Source: Macrostomum hystrix (lineage: Eukaryota; Animalia; Platyhelminthes). From it: a stretch of DNA of 64,000 nt. The translations under genes were made by a program, and so were the position numbers. The notes under the pieces were generated by a model. That model ran no database searches and had not been told where the DNA came from. It saw only the letters and a program-made list of their open reading frames with translations. Location of the stretch: NCBI GenBank assembly GCA_950097015.1, contig CATNEN010000030.1, forward strand, positions 2,170,001 through 2,234,000. Direction: 5' to 3'. Shown here one piece after another: positions 10,519-58,087 of the stretch (positions are counted from its first letter, which is position 1; every line of letters starts with the position of its first letter).

Positions 10519-13500
10519 TCAGGGAGCTACGGTGAACACGGGATGCTGCAGCAGCTGGCTCACTGTGGGCCTGGCCAGTGGATTCTTGGCAACGCAGGCG
10601 GCATAGAATGAGCAGAGGCGCTGCCCAATACCCAGCCGCTGCATGGCCTCCAACGGCAGCGGCTGGTCTTTGTTCTTGGCGTGGTGCAGCAGCCGGGCCA
10701 GGATCATGTCGTTCTCGGCGAACAGCGGCGGCAGACCGGTGCACAGCTCGTGCAGGCTGCAGCCAAGCGAGTACACGTCCGCCGCCTTCGGATCGTAGCG
10801 TCGACGTCGTTTTGTGAAATCCTCGGCGTGCAGTAGCACCTCCGGGGCCATCCAGAGCAGGGTGCCAACGCCAGAATGATAGATCTCCATGGCGTGGATT
10901 CGCTTCGACAGGCCAAAGTCGATGATCTTGATGATTCCAGTTGGTTGCTGCAGCATGAGGTTCTCGCACTTCACATCCCGATGGCATATGTTTAGGCCGT
11001 GCAAATAGTCCAGGCCGGCGCAGATCTGGCCAAGGTAATTCACAATGTCCCGCTCAGCCAGGCGGCCAAGCCGCTGCCGGTAGTGCCGCAGGTTCTCACC
11101 CTGGACGTACTCCATGCAGATTATGAGGGAGCCGGGAACTAGCTGGGCGCTGTGGAACTGCACAATGTTCGGATGCGTCAGGGACCGCATCAGCTCCACT
11201 TCGCGCCTATTGGCAACCGACAGAGCCTCGGCCTGATCTGATTGGTTGGTTCGGAACGGAGCTGAGACCACTTTGAGCACTAGATACTGACCGGCGCTAT
11301 TCTGGGCGCGGTAGACACAGCCGAAATGGCCCTGGTTGAGGTACTGCAGCGTCTCGCGTCGGATGTTCAAGCTCTGCAGAAAGCCGCTGAAATTGGTTTT
11401 AAAGATTCACGGGATCAGTGATTAATATCCCGAATGTCAATTCGGGATATCTCCGATCAAATGGGATATCCGGGATAACACGGGGTATCTAGGATTGCAT
11501 GGGATATCTAGCATGACGATGTATATATAGGGTAATTTAGGATCGCGATGGTTATCTAGGGTCATGAGGTTTATCGAGGGTCATGAGGGTTATCTAGGGT
11601 CATGAGGGTTATCTAGGGTCATGAGGGTTATCTAGGGTCATGAGGGTTATCTAGGGTCATGAGGGTTATCTAGGGTCATGAGGGTTATCTAGGGTCATGA
11701 GGGTTATCTAGGGTCATGAGGGTTATCTAGGGTCATGAGGGTTATCTAGGGTCCCGTAGGTTATCTAGGGTCTCGTGGGTTATCTAGGGTCATAAGAGTT
11801 ATCTAGGGTCATGAGTGTTATCTGGGGTCATGAGGGTAATCTGGGGTCATGAGGGTTATCTGGGATCACGTGGGTGACAATGTGCCTTAAATGGGAACTC
11901 ACGGTGGTAGGACGACTTGGTTGCTAACCATTCGGGTGAGAGTGCCGTTCACTTGAGCTGGAACGGCCGTGGCGGCTGCCCCGATGCTGTCATCTTTAAC
12001 GGACTGGCCGGGCTTTGATGCAACCAAGCCGGGGATCAGATTGTTGCTCTGATTGTCCACCACGCTGCAAGGATTGGCGTATGGTTGCTGTGGTTAGGGC
12101 GAGAATCGATATAATGTGTCAAGGTGAGAGAGAACATCACGACAAGACAGATTAAAATGTTTGATTACGTCGTCGAGGGTGTGTTACGTCGAGAGTTGAG
12201 CTGGGTGTGTTGCGTCGAGAGTTGAGTAGTGTGTGTTAGGAGGAAAGAGTTGAGTAGGATGTCTAACAGGGAGATAAGAGTTGACGGGGTTTGGTTACGC
12301 AATAGCAGTCATTATCAGAGTCAAAGTTAAGATAACAATGAAAAACCGCTCGCCCAGCAACTCACTCATCCTGAGCCGCCTCCAAGAGGCCGCAGATTTT
12401 CCTCAGCTTTGTCCGCTCCAGAAGCCTTCCAGCTTGGCCAGCCAGGGTGCTGAGCGCCGCGCTGATGGCCACACGCCTCTCGACGCCGCCGTCCGGCGAG
12501 CTCAGCAGGCGCTCCAGAACCACCACGTGGCCGTTGCAGGCAGCCAGCGTGATGGCCGACTGGCCGGATGCGTTGACGCGGCCGGGCCGAGCGCCGTGGT
12601 TCAACAGAGCCTCCATGGCTTCGGCATGGCCCGACTGAGCCGCCCACATCAGCGGCGTGTGTCCGTCGCTCTCGTCGGCTTTGTCAGCTTCAGCGCCAGC
12701 GTTCAGCAGAAGCTTCACCATGGCAGCGTTGCCAGCTTCGGCGGCCTTGGCTAGAGCAGTGCCATCGTCGGTTAGACGGTCAACGTCTGTCCGCCTGTCG
12801 GCCAATAGAACCTTGGCCACATCGGTGGAGTCGGTGTGCACGGCAGTGACCAGCGGAGTCCATCGGTGCCGCGGCTCGGCCAGGTTCGGATCGGCGCCGA
12901 AAGTCAAGAGTACCGCGGTGACTCCGGCGTGGCCGTTGAGTGCGGCAAGGATGAGAGGCGTTCGGCCCAGAACGCTGGTCACGGCATCCGCCCTGGCTCC
13001 GGCGCGCAGTAGCAGCTCGGCGCACTCGCGATGCCCACCGCAGGCGGCGTAAGCCAACGGTGAATAGCCGTCGATGTCGTCAGGACTGGCGTAGGGATCG
13101 GAGTCTGGATCGGACGCGGCGGCCAGGTTCGGATCGGCCCGCCGCTCCAGCAGCAGCCGGACCAAGTTGGCCTGGCCTCGGCTGGCTGCCATGGCCAGAG
13201 CGGTGCCGTCGGAGCTCATCGCGTTGGCGTCGGCACCGGCGTCGAGGAGAAGCCTGGCCAAGTCCAGCCGGTCGATGCTGACGGCGGCCAGCAGGGGAGT
13301 CCAGTTGAGCGTCGGCTCGAACTGGTTGGCGTTGGCGCGGGCCCGCAGAAGTTCGCTGGTCAGGCCCGCGTGGCCCCGGTGGACGGCCAGCAGCAGCGCC
13401 GGCTTGCCGTCCGGCCGGCTTGTCTGGTCGGGCCGGGCGCCGCGGGCCAGTAGGAGGCGCGCAAGCTCCGGACAGTCGCGATTGGCCTGCTGGCAGGCGG

Positions 13501-13702
13501 CAACGAGAGCGCCGGAGAGCTCAGGGTCGGCACCGTTGTCCAGGAGGACGGCCGCCGTGTCCGGCCTGCAGGGCTGACCAGCGGCCACAGCCAGCGCGGC
13601 TGACAAGGAGTCTGGCGAGGCTGGCGCCATTGCAGCCAGGAGACGGCGCAACGCGACGGCGTTGTCGCGCAGCACAGCCTCGTTGAGTGCGGACGGAATC
13701 AT
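10519..13702 (-). CDS. Ankyrin-repeat Ser/Thr protein kinase (N-terminal ANK array, linker, STE/MEKK-like kinase domain), 788 aa, 3 exons
   Basis: Exons 13702-12366, 12064-11903 and 11386-10519. Both donors are GTGAGT; acceptors CCTTGCAG and ATTTCAG; both junctions phase 2; total 2367 nt in frame. About 10 ANK repeats (G.TPL..A). Kinase motifs QGHFGCV, LVLK, HRDVKCEN, DFG, GTLLWMAPE, DVYSLG. The kinase ORF lacks its own ATG. Confidence 0.85.
11560..11865. repeat. Intronic minisatellite, 19 bp unit GGGTTATCTAGGGTCATGA
   Basis: Direct tandem repetition with degenerate flanks, inside intron 2 of the ANK-kinase gene. Confidence 0.95.
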
Positions 13703-24108: not shown

Positions 24109-25930
24109 TTGGCTAGCTGCTGCTCGCTGCGATCTGCAGATCCGCATGTTATTGCTGCCAGTAGTAAATGAATAATGTATGAGGTTTTGTATAAAAAACC
24201 GGTCATAGAAATCATTATAGGCACGCTATCGATCTGCAAGGTTTTTATTTGAGCACCAATTTTGTGATTTGTTTTGTTCCTTGTGACCCGCAGTTACAAA
24301 CAATGTTAAATGATAAAATATTTTCGTCAAGAAAATTTCACGAAAAATGGGTGTACATTTTCTGATTTTAGGTTTAATTTTCGATTTTGTTAAGTTAAGC
24401 TCTTTTAAGATCTTTATATTTAAAATGTTGTGTGTCGTGATTTTTTAGACCGGAAAATCACATTTTTATGATTTTTTCTATTTTTCATTGTCGTGCAATT
24501 TTTCTTCTTGCTAATGCCAAGCATGCTCTGTGTTAGAGTTAAATGCACTTTTGGATCCATTCATTATTGTTCTCTAAGATTTAGTTTTTAACATTTGTTC
24601 CGTCCAAAACTTAGCTTTTTCTTCTCTATCAAGCATCTCAAAGCAGTTTTCCTTCCCGTATATTTTAGCTAGCTAGTGTAAGCATGAAACCCATACTTCA
24701 TATGTTATATTCGTATTAATATGCCCAGTGTAAAAATGCTATTAGTGCCTTTGCTCATATTTTGCCTTTAAAATTCTTTAATTGAACCAGACGCATCTAT
24801 TAGATTATTAGTTAGTTAATCCGTAGTTCCATTGAAGAAAAAGAATTATCTTCACTGACTTAAATAAAAACGTTGCATATTTGGATTGATTGAAAGTTAT
24901 TTCGCAATTTATCAATAAATGCATAAGTGCATAAATCAAAGGTTAGCTTAAGAAGTGCTGAACTCGTATCTCTGTTTATTCAATAGTATTTACATGCATA
25001 AACGTTGGACTTGGGAAATATATTTAAAGTACGCATCTCAATCAGGCCTCAATATCAAAGGCAGTTTTGTCCAGCCTCACCCCTGTCTCCATGCAGTATC
25101 TGGGGCCGCAGACATTGAGCTCGCCAAATAACTATCGGCTGCCATCGTTTCCCTTTATCATTCAATTTAAGATAGAGTGACATCCAGTTCACTAAAACAA
25201 CGCTGAGTGCTTTCAGTCCGTTCGTCCACCTGAATGGATGCGTTCGATCTAAAAGCGATCCTCGCAGATGCCTCACCGTCTGCTTAACTCGAGTTTCCTT
25301 GGCGTGCCTCTGTCCAGTCTACCGACAAATCGCAGTCTGCAGCCACCCGTCACGCTCCGCCCGCCCTCCCCCTGAGCCAGCCAGCATCGACTCAAATTGT
25401 AGGACGGGGACTTCTGTCACCCCCCACCACCGCCGATGGCATCCGGGCGGGCCCTGTCAGCGAGTCTGTCGGGCATCAAGTAAAGAAAGAGATTGCGAAA
25501 AAGCAGACGACAAGAGAGGACGAAAAGTGTTGTGCAGATGCGAAGCTTGTGGGCTGTGGCGGGAGAGGCAGGGAGAATTCAGAGGCAGGGCAAATAAAGA
25601 AAATCATGGGCGTTCCCCTCCATCGAAGCGCCGGCTTAGGCCTCAAAAACAAGGCTGTGGAGGAGTCGGATTGGCTGCTTCAGTGAGCCGAGAAACCATT
25701 TGCCCCTTGCCGGCCTGCCAGCCTCCGCAAATCAAGCGGAGGTTCGCTTCTTCTTATTTCCGCTTCATTTTCGCCTCCGTTCCAAGCCGCTTTGCAAGAC
25801 GCCGACAATCTCTACTCGAGCGGAGTGAGTAGTGCTCAAACAGGGGGTCCGAGAAAGTAGAAGAAACACCACTTGGAGTGCTTTCGCCGGCTCAATACTA
25901 AGAATCAAGGGTCCTTTAGCCGGGTTCACG

Positions 25931-36675
<10,745 letters not shown>

Positions 36676-38489: not shown

Positions 38490-38649
38490 TCAAGCGTCGA
38501 TTCCGACCTCCAACGGATCATTGGAGCCGCGAGTGGCCAGGTGAGACACGGATGACGAATCTGACAGGTCGCTGACATCCGGGCCGTAGTCCGACACCCG
38601 CCGGCTCGATCCGTCCGCGGAGCCGCCAACTCCGCCGTTCAGTTTGTGT

Positions 38650-38709
<60 letters not shown>

Positions 38710-41404
38710 AAATCCGATCCCGAGTTCAGGCGCAGAGTTGGGATCTGGAAGGCTGAACTGTTGGCCAGCTTGTTGACCTTGGCGTCCTCTGAATCATCAG
38801 CAGCCGCATCCTTGGCCCCGTCAGCCAGGCGTTGATTCTGCTTTTCTCGTCGACGCAGCCGGCGTCGAAGACACCAGCCACGGCAGGAGGAGACCGCGGA
38901 GCCGATGCTGTCAACAATTCGACCGCTGCCGCTGAGCTGCTCCGCTTCGTCTAGCGTGTCGGGCGGCCGGCAGCGCCGTGTCTCCGGCAGGAGCAGCGCC
39001 AGGCAGCAGCCGGCCGCAGCCAGAAGGCCGCACAGCAGCGACGGCAGCGGCTGCCAGACGCCGGCCAACAGTCCCAGCTGGGCAGCGACGACTCCGCCGA
39101 CCCTGGCCGACGTCGACGCCACGCCTAAGCAGGAATTTCTAGCCGACGTTGGAAAGGCCTCGCTGGCGTGCAGCCAGGCGGCTTCGAATGCCAAAAGAAG
39201 GCCGAATCGACCGGCCAGAGCCGCGGTCAGGCGGCCGGCGAAGCTGGAAGAAGCGCAGGACATTGCCAGCAGGGAGACGGCGCCGATGCCATTTGCGGCG
39301 AAGAGCAACGCGACGCGGCCGCTGAAACTGCCGGCTGCCATGCCGAAAAGGCGTGCGGCCACCTCGGCTCCGGCCGCCATGGTAGCGCTGGCGAAAGCGT
39401 CTCCGCCGCCGATCAAGTCCGTCCAGCCGAGCGCCAGGCCGTAATAGCCGGCGCTGACTATCGCAAAGACGGCCCACACTGTCAGGGCGAGGCGGCGAAG
39501 TGCGGGCCGGCGAAGCAGATTTAACAGTGGCAAGGAGCCCGCAGTGGCTTCTCGGTGTTCTGCTTGGCTCGAATCTCCAGGGTTGTTGAATTTGGTCTCG
39601 TCCCTAAGCATGGGGTCAAATGATGGTCATGAAAGATAAAAAGAATCGAGCATAAATAAATCCACGAAACATTGCTGTAACTCAATAGGGTCTGCGTAAA
39701 TCGACAGTCAGCCTACCTTCAATGATAAGAATAATAATTGCAGGAAGGCAACGCTCACGCAGGTGTGTACGAGTACATCTGCCCTGAATTTCTCATCGTC
39801 AGGCAGTGTACACTTCACTGTGCCTTGAAGGTTGGCCCTCAAGGGCGTAAATGGAATGACAAACTCCCAAGCCTTCTCTCCGCGACTGTGCCCCAAGTGA
39901 ATGTGGCCTCCCTATGACCCCCAATCACCCCCAACCAACCTTTTCGTTAGCATCAGCTGCTCCTCGTGCTGCTGCTGCTGCTGCTGCTGCTGCTGATTCT
40001 GATGATTGTGATTATTGTTTTTTACTTGCAGGGGCTGCCTCTCCAGCAGCCGCTGCAGCCGACTTGCGGTCCGATTAATCCGGGCCATTCGGCACAGAGC
40101 TGCAAGAGCGGCCTCCGTACGGCCGCGCGAGAGAAGCCATCGCGGAGACTCCACTGCGAACAGCCATGCTGGCGGCAGCAGCAGCAGCGCCGGGCCCGAC
40201 GCCAGCAGCTCCGTGGTGCGCCAGTCGCGAGTCCACATGGCCGCTCCTGTCAGGGCCAATAGGCCCAGGCTCCAGCCGTTCTTCATCAACAGGCTGAGCA
40301 GGAAGCGGTCCCGATGGTGCATGGTCTCGGCGTGCCACGTGTAGCTAACGCTCAGCAGGCCGGCTGACGCGAAGCCGGCGAGGCAGCGGAGCCCGGCGTA
40401 GGTCACGACGTCCTTGGCCACCGCGGCGATGGAGCCCGAGACGGCCAGGTTCACACAGGCCACGACGAAGGCGCCACGGCGGCCGCATCTGTCCGACAGT
40501 AGGCCGTAGCAGGCGCTGCCGGCGAGGAAACCCAGCATAAACAGCACCTTGACGACGGTTGCTAAGTACTCTCGATCACAAACTAGACGAAATGTCTCCA
40601 GTGAGGTCTCCGTCATCTGGCGATTGTTGAAGACTAGCCGCTGACAGCCCCCGCTTGCCGTCCAGTTGGCCGAGCAGGCGTTCATTTCTGTTGTGAAATT
40701 CGCAGTCGCAGCAGAATTAGCCAGTCTAGCAGTTGCCGAGCCGTTGCCGCCCTCCGCAGCTTCCATTGAGTTGTCAAGACAGGCGAACGGTCGGCGAAGC
40801 ATGGTGAAGTTCACTGACAGGGTCTGCATCGCCGGAAACGCTGACGACAGCGCCATCAAGCAGAGGAAGCCGGCCTGGTAGGCCCGGCGGCGTCCCACGG
40901 CTTCAAGAAGCTCCTCGCATGTTGGCGATTGAACCGGCTGCGGCTGATGTGGCTGCTGCAACTGCTCAGGCTGCTGCGGCTGATGTTCTTGTTGACCTAC
41001 CTGCGGCTACAGGGGGGTGGGTGGCATGGCGCGTTTGCCTCTTGTACCAACTTGCTGAGCTCCATTCCGCGGCGAGGCCGCATTCATTTGGGGCGCAGCC
41101 GCGGAGAAAATACTTGATGGGCTTGTCGTGCAATTTTCGCCTTTTCTAAAGGCGAACTTCTAAAGCACTATGAGAAAGTCAGGGCAGATGTACACACCTG
41201 TGTGAGAATGCGCCCCTGCGTACGGTATCTGTGTGCGTGTGTGCTCAGGAGTCAGCAAAATGGGCAGAATTGTCTTTCTTAGCCCGTTGCTCTACTGCAA
41301 TTATTTTATAATTACCTGCGGCTGCTGCTGCTGATTTTCGAGTTGCTGCTGCAGCAGCGTCTGTGGCTGGTCAGCCAGGTTGCGGCTGTTTGAGGAGATC
41401 AGGT
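38490..41404 (-). CDS. SLC22-family (MFS) organic cation/anion transporter; the start-codon exon is unresolved
   Basis: Exons 41404-41316 (probable), 41000-39940 and 39603-38490, in frame. Motifs EELLEAVG...YQ, FRLVCDRE, LSDRCGRR, ESPRWLLSRG, SEAFPTSARNSCLG, LLLPET. Confidence 0.9.
39752..39911 (-). mobile_element. SINE family A, partial copy in an SLC22 intron
   Basis: Reverse-complement match to the 52398-52838 element (GTGTACACTGCCTGACGATGAGAAA...CAGGGCAGATGTAC). Confidence 0.85.
41040..41280 (+). mobile_element. SINE family A copy in an SLC22 intron
   Basis: ATTCCGCGGCGAGGCCGCATTCATTTGGGGCGCAG...GAGAAAGTCAGGGCAGATGTACACAC...AATGGGCAGAATTG shared with the other copies. Confidence 0.85.
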
Positions 41405-52400: not shown

Positions 52401-55400
52401 GGGGGTTAATGGCAAAGCGGTTAACGCGTTTGCCTCACGCACCAAGGTCCCAAAGTTCGATTCCGCGGCGAGGCCACATTCATTTGGGGCGCAGTCACGG
52501 AGAGAAGGCTTGGGAGTTTGTCGTGCCATTTACGCCATTGAGGACCAACCTTCAAGGCACAGTGAAGTGTACACTGCCTGACGATGAGAAAGTCAGGGCA
52601 GATGTACACACTTGGGTGAGCGTGTGCTGTGTACGGTATCTGTGTGCATGTGTGCGCGCCCAGGCTCTGAAGCGTGCACTGTGACGCTGCCTTTTCCACC
52701 TGACAGCGTACTTTGTTGTTGTTGTTGTTGTTGTGCTCAGGAGTCAGCGAAATGGGCAGAATTGCCTCCTCGCTGGCTGCGTGTCTAGTGTCACCAAATG
52801 ATGTGCCACTGCCCGCAGCCCTCCAGCAAATAATATTAAAAGCACACTTAAAATTTTAACGAAAACTTCGCTTGACAGACCAACTGGAAATCAGCAAGCA
52901 GGCATTCAGAGCGGCAAAATTTGTGGCCCTGGTTGAAGAGATGTCAGCCGACAGCCTCATGGACGCTTGGCAACAATTGGACTCGCACCGGGTCGACCTG
53001 GATTGCTCCGATCCTGAGACTGGGGGCACCTATCTGCACTTCTTGGTGCAGCAGTGAGCAAAAAACATTTATTGAGAACATTTATTGTTGCGCGGAACAT
53101 TCGCGATGTTTATAGGAAGCTTCTGAAAACTGTCAATTAGATAATTCTGGTCTGATTTAAAACCTGGTTGCTAATAAGGGCTGCATAATTTGTTTGCAAT
53201 TGGTTTGTCTGCTGGAACTTAAAAAAAGAGAACTTATTCCCTTACAAATGTACGAACATTAGCATGGGGTATAAATTTGAGTGAGTGCATCCATCTTGTG
53301 TTCCGTCAAACAAATTTACTCTCGCAATTACGGTTATTTACAAATTCTTTAAAGAGGCCAACTAAAATCAATATTCCGCAGCTATCTGAAAACTGAGGAG
53401 CTGCAGCTGAAGCGCCTGCTGATCCGCCTGATGTACAAGGCCGCACTTGAAGGCATCGACGTGCACGCTCGCAACAACCAAGGCGAGACAGTCCTGCTGG
53501 CAGCCTACAGCCAGCCGCCTGACCGCATCCTTCTCGACCACCTTATCTGCTTGGGCGTTGACGCTTCCGTGCGCGCCAACAGCGGTCATGTGATCATGCA
53601 GAACACCTACGCCACTAGGGGCGATCTTGTACGCCAGCGTCGTCACACTCGACGCCTGCTGCCCGGGCTTCATGTGGCGGTGGAGGACGGCGATGCTGAG
53701 CGAGTGCGCCACTGGCTCGGCTGCCTCTGCCGAGTCAGCGTTGTCAAGAATGGTCGCAGTCTGGCTGAGTTGTCTCGCGACATTGGCGATGAAAGCATTC
53801 AGCGTCAGCTTGAAGACAGTCTGCACACGTGCGAGTTCGCGGCCGCCTCCATCGCTGGAGACGTGCGCCGCATGAAGCACCACATCGCCATGGGCAACGG
53901 AGAGAAGAAAGCCAATGCTTGCTATCGGTAAGTCGACAAGGCCTATCATGAAAATCAGTGCTAAAACCTGTCGGATTTAGCACTGCATGTACGAGCTATA
54001 ACAAATCACTCAAAAAGTAGAACAACGGAGGCAAATTCAAACTTTTGTTGCTTGTTAGCCGTATAATGATCCAATCAAATTCCAGCCACTACTTCGCCGG
54101 CTTCACTGACGACTGGCGTGCCGAATTCGTGCCCCGGCCTCTCATAGCCAGCGTGATGGAGTACGGCACAGCCGAGATCGCCAGCTTCCTGTTGCAGTTC
54201 GGTGCCAGGCTGGACGTCCAGTACGAGGAGTGCGCGCCCTGCGGACCCGTCGCCTTCTGGGCCTTCCGAGACGACATCGCCAGCGACGTCACTGAGGCGA
54301 TTGCTGCGCACGCCGACGTGCGGCTGCGCGATGAGCTCGGCCGCACTATCCTGCACGCGGCGGTGATGAAGGACGACAATCCGGCGGCGAAGTGCCGTGT
54401 CGTTGAGCAGCTCCTGTCGCGTGGTGCCAACGTAGCCGCCCGCGACATGCGTGGCTGGACGCCGAGAGACTACTGCACCAAGGGCGGCGTCGTCGGCGGC
54501 TCTCGCATCGGCCAGATCATCGATGACTTCGTGCTGAACCTATCCTACGTCGGCGATATTGATGCCATCGAGCAGCTCATAATCGATGGCTACGATCATA
54601 TCAACGACATTCGCGGAACGTCGCGAAACAAGACTGCCAAGGAGCTGGCCACGCTGCGCTACTACAAGGAGCTTCTCGAACTACTGGACGAGGAGCCGAA
54701 ATATCACGAGGAAATCCAGCTGATTCACACGGCCGTCATTAATGACGATCGCAAGAGCTTCGTGAAGTTTGCCAATGAGAAGCGCGTACCATTGGGTGTC
54801 GACCGGCGAGGCCGGAACCTGCTGCACATGGCCGTGCTCATGGAGAACCACGACATGGTGGCCGCCATCTGTGAGCAGTTTCCGCAGATGATCTACAAAG
54901 GCGACAATCTACTAAGGACGCCTGTGCACTATGCCGTCTGCATTCGCGACCAGCGAGCCACTCTCTCGGTCATCTCTACGTCAAACAGCGTCGACATGTC
55001 CGCCAGGGACGCCGTAAGTATGAAATTCAATGGAAGAGTACAAAAATTGGGGTGGGTGAGTATACCGTACACAGACTGAACTGCCTTTGGAAGCGCCACG
55101 CAATGATTGCGGCTGTGCCACTGTACATCTGTGCTCTGCACATCTGTGCCACTGTACACATCTGTGCTCTGCACATCTGTGCCACTGTACATCTGTGCTC
55201 TGCACATCTGTGTCACTGTACATCTGTGCTCTGCACATCTGTGCCACTGTACATCTGTGCTCTGCACATCTGTGTCACTGTACATCTGTGCTCTGCACAT
55301 CTGTGCCACTGTACAACTGTGCTCTGCACATCTGTGTCACTGTACATCTGTGCTCTGCACATCTGTGCCACTGTACATCTGTGCTCTGCGCATCTGTGCC

Positions 55401-56088
55401 ACTGTACAACTGTGCTCTGCACATCTGTGTCACTGTACATCTGTGCTCTGCACATCTGTGCCACTGTACATCTGTGCTCTGCACATCTGTGCCACTGTAC
55501 ATCTGTGCTCTGCACATCTGTGCCACTGTACAACTGTGCTCTGCACATCTGTGTCACTGTACATCTGTGCTCTGCACATCTGTGCCACTGTACAACTGTG
55601 CTCTGCACATCTGTGCCACTTTACGTTTAGCCCAAATGGGCTAGATGTCATTTCTGCTCTCTTTCTCAGCTCAATTCTACTCAATTGACACCGCAGAACA
55701 ATCTGAGTGTCCTGGATTATATTGACCAGCTGGATAGGCCCACTCCGACCAAGCTGAAGACGCGAGGCCGGCGAACCCACGACTACAAGGTAAGCGAGCG
55801 CCTTCTTGAAGTATGACTCCCAAGATGTCACCAGCTGAGATTCCGGAAAACTGTGGCAGTATAGGTGATTCACGTACTAGACGTGCTAAAGCAAGTCCGT
55901 GCATTTTTGCGCAGGTCGGTGATCTACTAGAGACCGAGCGCAACCAGACGCCGCAGTACTTGGCCAGGCTGGCTGCCGAGGTGGAGGCAAGAGCTGCTGC
56001 TGAAGAGGAGGCGGCGTTTGATCCGGAGCGAGCTGATCGCCTGGCGTCGCCGCGTCAGCTGAGCGGTGCCATCGACTCAGCGGCCTAA
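49471..56088 (+). CDS. Multi-ankyrin-repeat protein, 910 aa, 9 exons, no catalytic domain recognised
   Basis: Exons 49471-49801, 49879-49995, 51877-52095, 52185-52334, 52879-53053, 53382-53927, 54086-55013, 55697-55789 and 55915-56088, all GT-AG, total 2733 nt in frame. ANK motifs DVNAQNRVGNTALHTA, DELGRTILHAAV, DRRGRNLLHMAV, DNLLRTPVHYAV. Confidence 0.85.
50085..50615. repeat. Intronic minisatellite, 15 bp unit GAGTCGTCGATTCCT
   Basis: Direct tandem repetition in intron 2 of the ANK gene. Confidence 0.96.
51030..51175 (-). mobile_element. SINE family B fragment (head plus part of the core)
   Basis: GTGTCTTGCTTAA...GATTCGAACTCCTGACCTCTCGG...ACCACT resembles the family B copies. Confidence 0.55.
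52398..52838 (+). mobile_element. SINE family A, full-length copy with a 14 bp target-site duplication
   Basis: tRNA-like head with A box TGGCAAAGCGG and B box GTTCGATTCC; AAAGCACACTTAAA at 52384-52397 and 52839-52852. Confidence 0.92.
55110..55620. repeat. Intronic minisatellite, 31 bp unit CTGTGCCACTGTACATCTGTGCTCTGCACAT
   Basis: Direct tandem repetition in intron 7 of the ANK gene. Confidence 0.97.
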
Positions 56089-56946: not shown

Positions 56947-57285
56947 TCAGTAGGACTCAAACGGCCAGGCGCCAATCTCGTTACAGAACAGGCCATATCG
57001 GATGCACATTCGCAGTATCATGGGCATGTTTCTTTCGGCGCGCTTGTTAAAAAAGCCTCGCCGATTGATGAAGCCCCTCTTGTTGAAGTAGCCCCGCTTG
57101 CCCGGGACTAGACGCGCCGGCGATTGTCCGGCCTCCGTGATGGCAACGGATTCATCCCAACTGGCTAGCTCCGGCACATTTGGCGGCATTAGTGCCGCTG
57201 CCGATGCCTCCTGACCGAGACCCACGCAGGCGACTAAAGCAGCAACAGCCAGAAGCCAACTTAGTCGAACCAGCTGGGACGTCAT
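56947..57285 (-). CDS. Neuropeptide precursor, 112 aa, releasing GYFN, GFIN and GFFN tetrapeptides (achatin-like) plus a C-terminal C-x6-C peptide
   Basis: Signal peptide MTSQLVRLSWLLAVAALVACVGLG; KR-GYFN-KR-GFIN-RR-GFFN-KR; acceptor TTTCGACAG 9 nt before the ATG and a GTGAGT donor at ~57372 (5'UTR intron). Confidence 0.88.
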   Translation of the reverse strand: MTSQLVRLSWLLAVAALVACVGLGQEASAAALMPPNVPELASWDESVAITEAGQSPARLVPGKRGYFNKRGFINRRGFFNKRAERNMPMILRMCIRYGLFCNEIGAWPFESY

Positions 57286-58087
57286 GCTCGCTTTCTGTCG
57301 AAATGTAGTTTGATAGATAATAGTTTTTTCAGTTGATATTCAGAAACAAGACAGAATCTAGGAGATCACTCACCTTAGTAGCCAAGGTATGCTTTCCGCA
57401 GTTGTTGAAGCGTAGCAAAGAATTTCTGCCGCCTGGGAGGATACCTCGCTTTTAAAGGGAATTATTTTACCTCAGAAGCTCACAGATGCTTCCCCGATTG
57501 GAAAGCCGCGGATTGAGTCAACTGTACCCGCGGCAGCAGGATTTTGGCCGCAAGTCGCGCCAGATGCGCCAGGTTCAGTTTCAGTCTCTAGGTGCCGAGT
57601 TGGAGTGGAGACAACAGACGCAGGAGATTAATCAGCTTCTCATCCTCAGTGACTATCCGATGTTAGAAATTTAAATCTTTTTAAGACCCCATAGTCCGGG
57701 GTGGACATTTCCAAGTCCTGGTTTTATAAGGTAAGGTCCATTACCGGGAGTTCCGAATAAATTCTCATAAAAAAATATTCGAACTGACTCGGCAACTGAT
57801 TCCACCCACTCATTTTAGGCCGAGTAATTGAATTTCTATTCCTGGACATCTTATTGACTGGCGAATTGCAAGGCAGCTGACGAACAGTAAATAACCATTC
57901 GAAAGTATTGTTACTTATATTTAATACGAATGCTAACTATTTTTACTATACAAATACAATTGACAGTCTACTAGCAGTTAGCTTTATCCTCCTAAAATCC
58001 GTTGGACGAAAAATCTGGCATAAGTTGTGCCGAAATAGTAAAAAAATTCTTCATTTCGCTTCATCTCATTGGGCTTTCCGACCTCAA

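Follow-up and report, generated by a model that had tools for sequence, protein, structure and literature searches.

Achatins belong to the small set of animal neuropeptides that depend on a D-amino acid, and to our knowledge the neuronal enzyme that makes this residue has never been identified. The published tetrapeptides begin with Gly or another residue, carry Phe or Tyr at position 2 and have a variable residue (Gly, Ala, Trp, Ser, Val or Phe) at position 3; they end with Asp in molluscs and annelids, with Glu in some nemerteans, and with Asn in the form GFGN. Precursor variants include GFGD, GFAD, GYGE, GFGE, GISD, TFFD and MFGD, with one GFGN copy in Notospermus, and GFGN achatins have been described from hemichordates, amphioxus, priapulids, Xenoturbella and nemertodermatids. 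The precursors of Achatina, Helobdella and nemerteans contain runs of tetrapeptides with KR alone as the separator. Both Aplysia peptides, GFFD and GYFD, are isomerised. For flatworms, the literature that we searched yielded no report of an achatin peptide or receptor and no Macrostomum neuropeptide catalogue, and a planarian prohormone catalogue does not mention achatin.

We analysed a 64-kb stretch of the Macrostomum hystrix genome (hereafter the window) and examined an open reading frame (ORF) on its minus strand that reads as a candidate achatin-type precursor. Its features, from the coding sequence inward and then upstream, are as follows:

56947–57285, minus strand: complete coding sequence in a single coding exon, 112 codons plus a stop codon at 56947–56949 (ORF list and translation).
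57214–57285, minus strand: predicted signal peptide, residues 1–24, with a basic n-region, a hydrophobic core and small residues at −3/−1 before Gln25 (Kyte-Doolittle profile; cleavage site placed by inspection under the −3/−1 rule).
57100–57213, minus strand: acidic N-terminal propeptide, residues 25–62, beginning with Gln and ending with Pro-Gly before KR (translation; processing predicted from general prohormone rules).
57082–57093, minus strand: tetrapeptide GYFN, residues 65–68, flanked by KR (57094–57099) and KR (57076–57081) (translation).
57064–57075, minus strand: tetrapeptide GFIN, residues 71–74, flanked by KR (57076–57081) and RR (57058–57063) (translation).
57046–57057, minus strand: tetrapeptide GFFN, residues 77–80, flanked by RR (57058–57063) and KR (57040–57045) (translation).
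56950–57039, minus strand: C-terminal 30-residue peptide (the tail), residues 83–112 (translation).
56983–57006, minus strand: Cys94–Cys101 loop in the tail, CIRYGLFC, a C-x6-C of the form C-x3-G-x2-C (translation).
57295–57373, minus strand: putative 79-nt intron in the 5′ UTR, GTGAGT...CAG (sequence reading).

The initial annotation had described three non-amidated G-aromatic-x-N tetrapeptides between dibasic sites, and the translation of the ORF reads exactly so: the layout is KR/KR/RR/KR, the tetrapeptides stand in tandem and a basic pair is the sole separator between them. GYFN, GFIN and GFFN are predicted to be non-amidated because no Gly follows any of them. The amidation site noted upstream, LVPG-KR, is likewise present, the propeptide ending in Gly before KR. 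Since the propeptide starts with Gln and ends with Pro-Gly before KR, it could yield a 37-residue Pro-amide peptide, or it may be a plain acidic spacer. The hydrophobicity profile and inspection both identify a secretory signal peptide, as in an achatin-type precursor, with a Kyte-Doolittle maximum of 3.06 at residue 11 (11-residue window). The start codon is preceded by A at −3 and by no in-frame ATG, with or without splicing of the putative upstream intron, whose CAG acceptor, 9 nt before the start codon, could alternatively be a trans-splice acceptor. By sequence reading, no canonical AATAAA occurs within about 300 nt downstream of the stop codon.

The window holds several other features. 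On the plus strand, 25832–27376 is a large TRPC channel exon with ankyrin and TRP_2 domains that matches vertebrate TRPC5/4/3 with higher scores than Drosophila TRP-gamma. Two ankyrin-repeat ORFs lie at 12362–13702 (minus strand, 446 residues, in a stretch of 62% GC) and 54045–55079 (plus strand), and a 15/31-bp tandem repeat at 55500–55624 overlaps long plus-strand ORFs of the ankyrin-gene region (55052–55688). On the minus strand, an MFS/sugar-transporter-like gene is represented by two ORFs at 38490–40961 and has a C-terminal part that ends in about 22 glycines, and 29342–30739 is a 465-codon ORF made entirely of an in-frame 42-bp (14-residue) minisatellite in about 33 copies, with a single weak and probably spurious Pfam match.

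Is the precursor frame a gene? An ORF of 112 codons is by itself unremarkable in a 64-kb window, and the collections searched held no transcript record, annotation or orthologue for it; both points are consistent with a chance or decayed, unexpressed ORF. However, the six-frame amino-acid frequencies of the window predict only about 3e-10 occurrences per whole genome of three G-aromatic-x-[N/D] units enclosed by four dibasic sites. A fresh expansion of repetitive DNA does not account for the units either. The three 18-nt units are identical at only 10–14 of 18 nt, and Tandem Repeats Finder reports an 18-bp period with matches of 66% only. The Arg codons at the four dibasic sites are CGG, AGG, CGA and CGC, Phe is encoded by TTC and TTT, and Asn by AAC and AAT. 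The tetrapeptide array is thus an in-frame repeat that has diverged and no recent DNA repeat, and because conserved residues carry differing synonymous codons, its pattern is the one that selection on the peptides would be expected to leave. Codon usage also speaks against a chance ORF. A codon log-odds score, for which 28 intronless GPCR ORFs from this genome served as the training set, gave the precursor frame +0.35 bits per codon and the other five frames −0.10 to −0.50; for reference, real coding chunks scored 0.545 ± 0.25 and gene-flank ORFs −0.31 ± 0.23, with a maximum of 0.19. Coding-type codon usage is thus confined to the precursor frame among the six. A good signal peptide and start context point the same way, and we consider a chance or decayed ORF improbable.

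How does the predicted precursor compare with known achatins? One close likeness is to the achatin-like precursor of Aplysia (GdFFD and GdYFD), which also carries non-amidated Gly-Phe-Phe-x and Gly-Tyr-Phe-x peptides cut at dibasic sites. The Aplysia peptides GFFD and GYFD differ from GFFN and GYFN of Macrostomum solely in the last residue, Asp versus Asn, and Macrostomum has a third peptide with Ile at position 3. Aplysia is a mollusc in which the D-residue has been demonstrated, whereas M. hystrix is a flatworm whose peptides are predicted from the gene. What links the Macrostomum peptides to the GFGN achatins is the Asn at the C-terminus, the dibasic sites on either side and a start with Gly-Phe; at position 3, Macrostomum has Phe or Ile instead of Gly, and spacers often separate the copies in GFGN precursors. 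The initial annotation had presented an Asn-ending achatin as a variant, and this feature proved not to be novel, since GFGN achatins are already known from several phyla and from the nemertean copy. Neither Ile at position 3, as in GFIN, nor a hydrophobic residue at that position together with a final Asn has been reported among achatins.

The nemertean, annelid and snail precursors (GFGD, GFAD, GYGE, TFFD and others) resemble the Macrostomum precursor in that their tetrapeptides abut with a basic pair between them. They differ in copy number (5 to more than 25, versus three in Macrostomum), in ending with Asp or Glu except for the one GFGN copy, whereas all Macrostomum copies end with Asn, and in having extra Cys pairs before the repeats, whereas the Macrostomum precursor has no N-terminal Cys pair. 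In five heteronemertean precursors, the tetrapeptide run is followed by a spacer with the loop CEILGYPC or CGLLGYPC, of the same size and with the same Gly position as CIRYGLFC in the Macrostomum tail. This likeness was compared by eye and after the fact, and was seen in heteronemerteans alone; the similar C-x3-G-x2-C loop lends modest support to the achatin reading.

Sequence searches added little to this comparison. The precursor ORF matched no Pfam family and had no homologue at E ≤ 10 among 5.8 billion protein clusters, and a full HMMER search of 1.84 billion representatives returned a spurious bacterial repeat protein as the sole match. We found no orthologue in related species, with Macrostomum lignano proteins included in the collection searched, and no exact-protein record in assemblies, where the records of this genome may be missing. 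A protein language-model search placed the precursor near the neuropeptide precursors DH31, NPS, gastrin, PDH and galanin, with a weak score of 0.87. As literature strings, GYFN, GFIN and GFFN returned unrelated acronyms or nothing. Thus, the proposed clustering of the precursor with known achatins did not materialise, as no sequence search grouped it with anything. This blank weighs little, since searches of this kind often miss short, repetitive precursors. For a sense of the distances involved, the best matches to an intronless NPY-receptor-like gene of this genome come from M. lignano, at 68% and 57% identity, followed by other flatworms and lophotrochozoans. These matches fit a macrostomid other than M. 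lignano and no human source, and together with the TRPC exon scores they led us to reject an insect (Drosophila) origin of the DNA. With the nearest GPCR orthologue only 68% identical, a small precursor may be beyond search reach. Since the searches were blank, the case for an achatin rests on the anatomy of the precursor set against published sequences.

The locus could alternatively be a real secreted-peptide gene that is a lineage-specific orphan, with tetrapeptides that are achatin-like by convergence or that serve as a mere basic linker; bioactivity would then reside in the C-terminal 30-mer with its disulfide loop or in the N-terminal Pro-amide peptide. The lack of a detectable homologue in the protein collections searched fits this alternative, as do the presence of only three tetrapeptide copies, where most achatin precursors have many, and a tail with a defined Cys loop; moreover, four-residue motifs can arise convergently. 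However, the family assignment made in the initial annotation holds up in the residues allowed at each position, the non-amidated ends and the KR-type tandem layout, all of which fit published achatins, even though no sequence search supports the grouping. These same traits argue against an orphan, and the tail loop has its counterpart in the nemertean achatin precursors.

The precursor gene is single-copy in the 220-Mb genome (42 contigs). No second ORF with G-[F/Y]-x-[D/N/E] units, in tandem or flanked by KR, emerged from pattern scans of the whole genome. We rejected the other matches as achatin genes: some were DNA microsatellites, out of frame or lacking dibasic sites, and others were tiny ORFs. 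The tiny ORFs included the matches on contigs 2, 10 and 3. Chance out-of-frame matches came from a 29-bp satellite on contig 29 (1842156–1842868, minus strand) and a 19-bp satellite on contig 7 (11635904–11636022, minus strand). The (GYGDHS)n match on contig 34 (1674417–1674782, minus strand) has no basic sites; it is an 18-bp in-frame array that repeats GYGDHS about 20 times inside a 138-codon open frame, and it could encode a repeat protein rich in Gly and Tyr or be no more than a minisatellite. A single match on contig 27 (607098–607124, plus strand), R-G-F-E-E-K-R-G-F, recalls the nemertean GFGE achatins, with about one chance match expected.

If the tetrapeptides are achatins, a matching receptor might be found in the same genome. 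As a reference we took eight published achatin receptors from Platynereis (AKQ62997), Capitella, Lottia, Branchiostoma and Saccoglossus. The ECL2 motif C-x-S-x-G-Y-[T/S]-x-x-W-Q-R is invariant in all eight and missing in the neighbouring GPR19, GPR150 and 'unch_2' receptors. Back-translated as C-x-S-x-G-Y-T-x-x-W-Q-R, it had two perfect matches in the genome and none in reversed controls. The matches identify two candidate genes:

Contig 25, 1282669–1288256, minus strand: candidate GPCR gene with ECL2 CESEGYTEPWQR (ECL2 signature and 7tm_1 match).
Contig 38, 21221612–21222229, minus strand: candidate GPCR gene with ECL2 CGSSGYTADWQR (ECL2 signature and 7tm_1 match).

Both ECL2 matches lie inside 7tm_1 matches (model positions 86–260), about 55–60 codons in, which is the expected place of ECL2. 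About 4.5 kb upstream, the contig-25 gene has a TM3, YVQFVCLASTAFLLLAMTVDR, that is identical to the achatin-receptor consensus at 13 of 21 positions, with the LAST.F block in register, and its TM2, NFFLINLAVGD, keeps the Gly-Asp of NLA[I/V]GDL. The position of TM2 and TM3 on an upstream exon suggests an intron right after the DRY region. By motif scan, the TM2/ECL1-border motif TE[IL][LV]F.xF was not found in the contig-25 gene, and no TM2 or TM3 match was seen in the contig-38 gene. The achatin GPCR that had been predicted for this animal may therefore be encoded by one or both genes: at the level of motifs, the ECL2 signature in two GPCR genes and TM2 and TM3 in the contig-25 gene speak for it, but the TM2/ECL1 motif there does not. 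What the two Macrostomum genes have in common with achatin receptors is the ECL2 signature, and the likeness is one of motifs.

A 7tm_1 profile scan of the genome gave at least 155 matches. Among 30 GPCR loci examined, we saw no relevant receptor; three peptide-type clusters were galanin/somatostatin-, QRFP/NPFF- and NPY-like. Two further motifs, FQVLPQ of vasopressin receptors and QVV..DR as a strict form of TM3, returned chance matches only, and we rejected an achatin reading of a TM3 match on contig 5, which looks like a trochozoan FMRFamide-type receptor. Two GPCR ORFs on contig 29 (5310925–5311851 and 233325–234251), 5 Mb apart, are 100% identical over 419 residues, through a duplication that either is very recent or was introduced by the assembly.

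The achatin-receptor signatures in the genome, and the fact that the pattern scans revealed no other candidate ligand gene, count further against an orphan precursor, an explanation that we regard as unlikely. We favour instead, with reasonable though far from complete confidence, the reading that the locus is a real single-copy gene for a small secreted achatin-type prohormone. That the relation to achatins is one of homology, as opposed to resemblance, we infer from the compared sequences.

What would such a prohormone release? After removal of the signal peptide, prohormone convertases would cut the four dibasic sites and a carboxypeptidase would trim the basic residues. The products would be non-amidated GYFN, GFIN and GFFN, together with the disulfide-looped 30-residue tail and an N-terminal peptide that may carry a Pro-amide. 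The tetrapeptides may then act on one or both of the achatin-receptor-like GPCRs (contig 25, about 1.283–1.288 Mb; contig 38, about 21.222 Mb), a pairing proposed from their joint presence in the genome.

Would residue 2 be converted to the D-form? By analogy with achatin-I and Aplysia GdFFD/GdYFD, isomerisation of GYFN, GFIN and GFFN is plausible, and we would give it roughly even chances provided that the rest of the reading holds. The initial annotation took the locus to imply a peptide isomerase, an enzyme not to be read from a genome, since the neuronal isomerase is known as an enzyme activity only. In Aplysia this activity acts on peptides with Phe, Tyr, Trp or Leu at position 2, and the Gly-aromatic start of the three Macrostomum peptides is compatible with this substrate preference. 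Alternatively, an achatin-type precursor could give rise to all-L peptides in a flatworm system that works without isomerisation. A D-residue is unreadable from DNA, the enzyme responsible is recognised by its activity, and the replacement of Asp by Asn together with a bulky position 3 might alter what the receptor requires. Against all-L peptides, a review reports the D-residue as conserved across protostome and deuterostome achatins, and the Aplysia activity takes both Phe and Tyr, the residues at position 2 here. All-L peptides thus strike us as possible, on the doubtful side. Only tentatively do we go beyond the prohormone reading to a complete flatworm achatin system, which would join the ligand gene to two receptors and to a conversion of residue 2 from the L- to the D-form, and would combine a possibly ancestral Asn ending with an Aplysia-like hydrophobic position 3.

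The precursor locus reveals no new kind of system. If the gene is real, it would extend the achatin family to Platyhelminthes, and the Asn ending would not be confined to deuterostomes, priapulids and xenacoelomorphs. It would also provide a concrete candidate ligand-receptor pair in a genetically tractable worm. Should the complete system prove true, it would be the first neuropeptide system with a D-amino acid among Platyhelminthes, and Macrostomum, which is transgenic and amenable to RNAi, would become an animal in which to hunt for the neuronal peptide isomerase.
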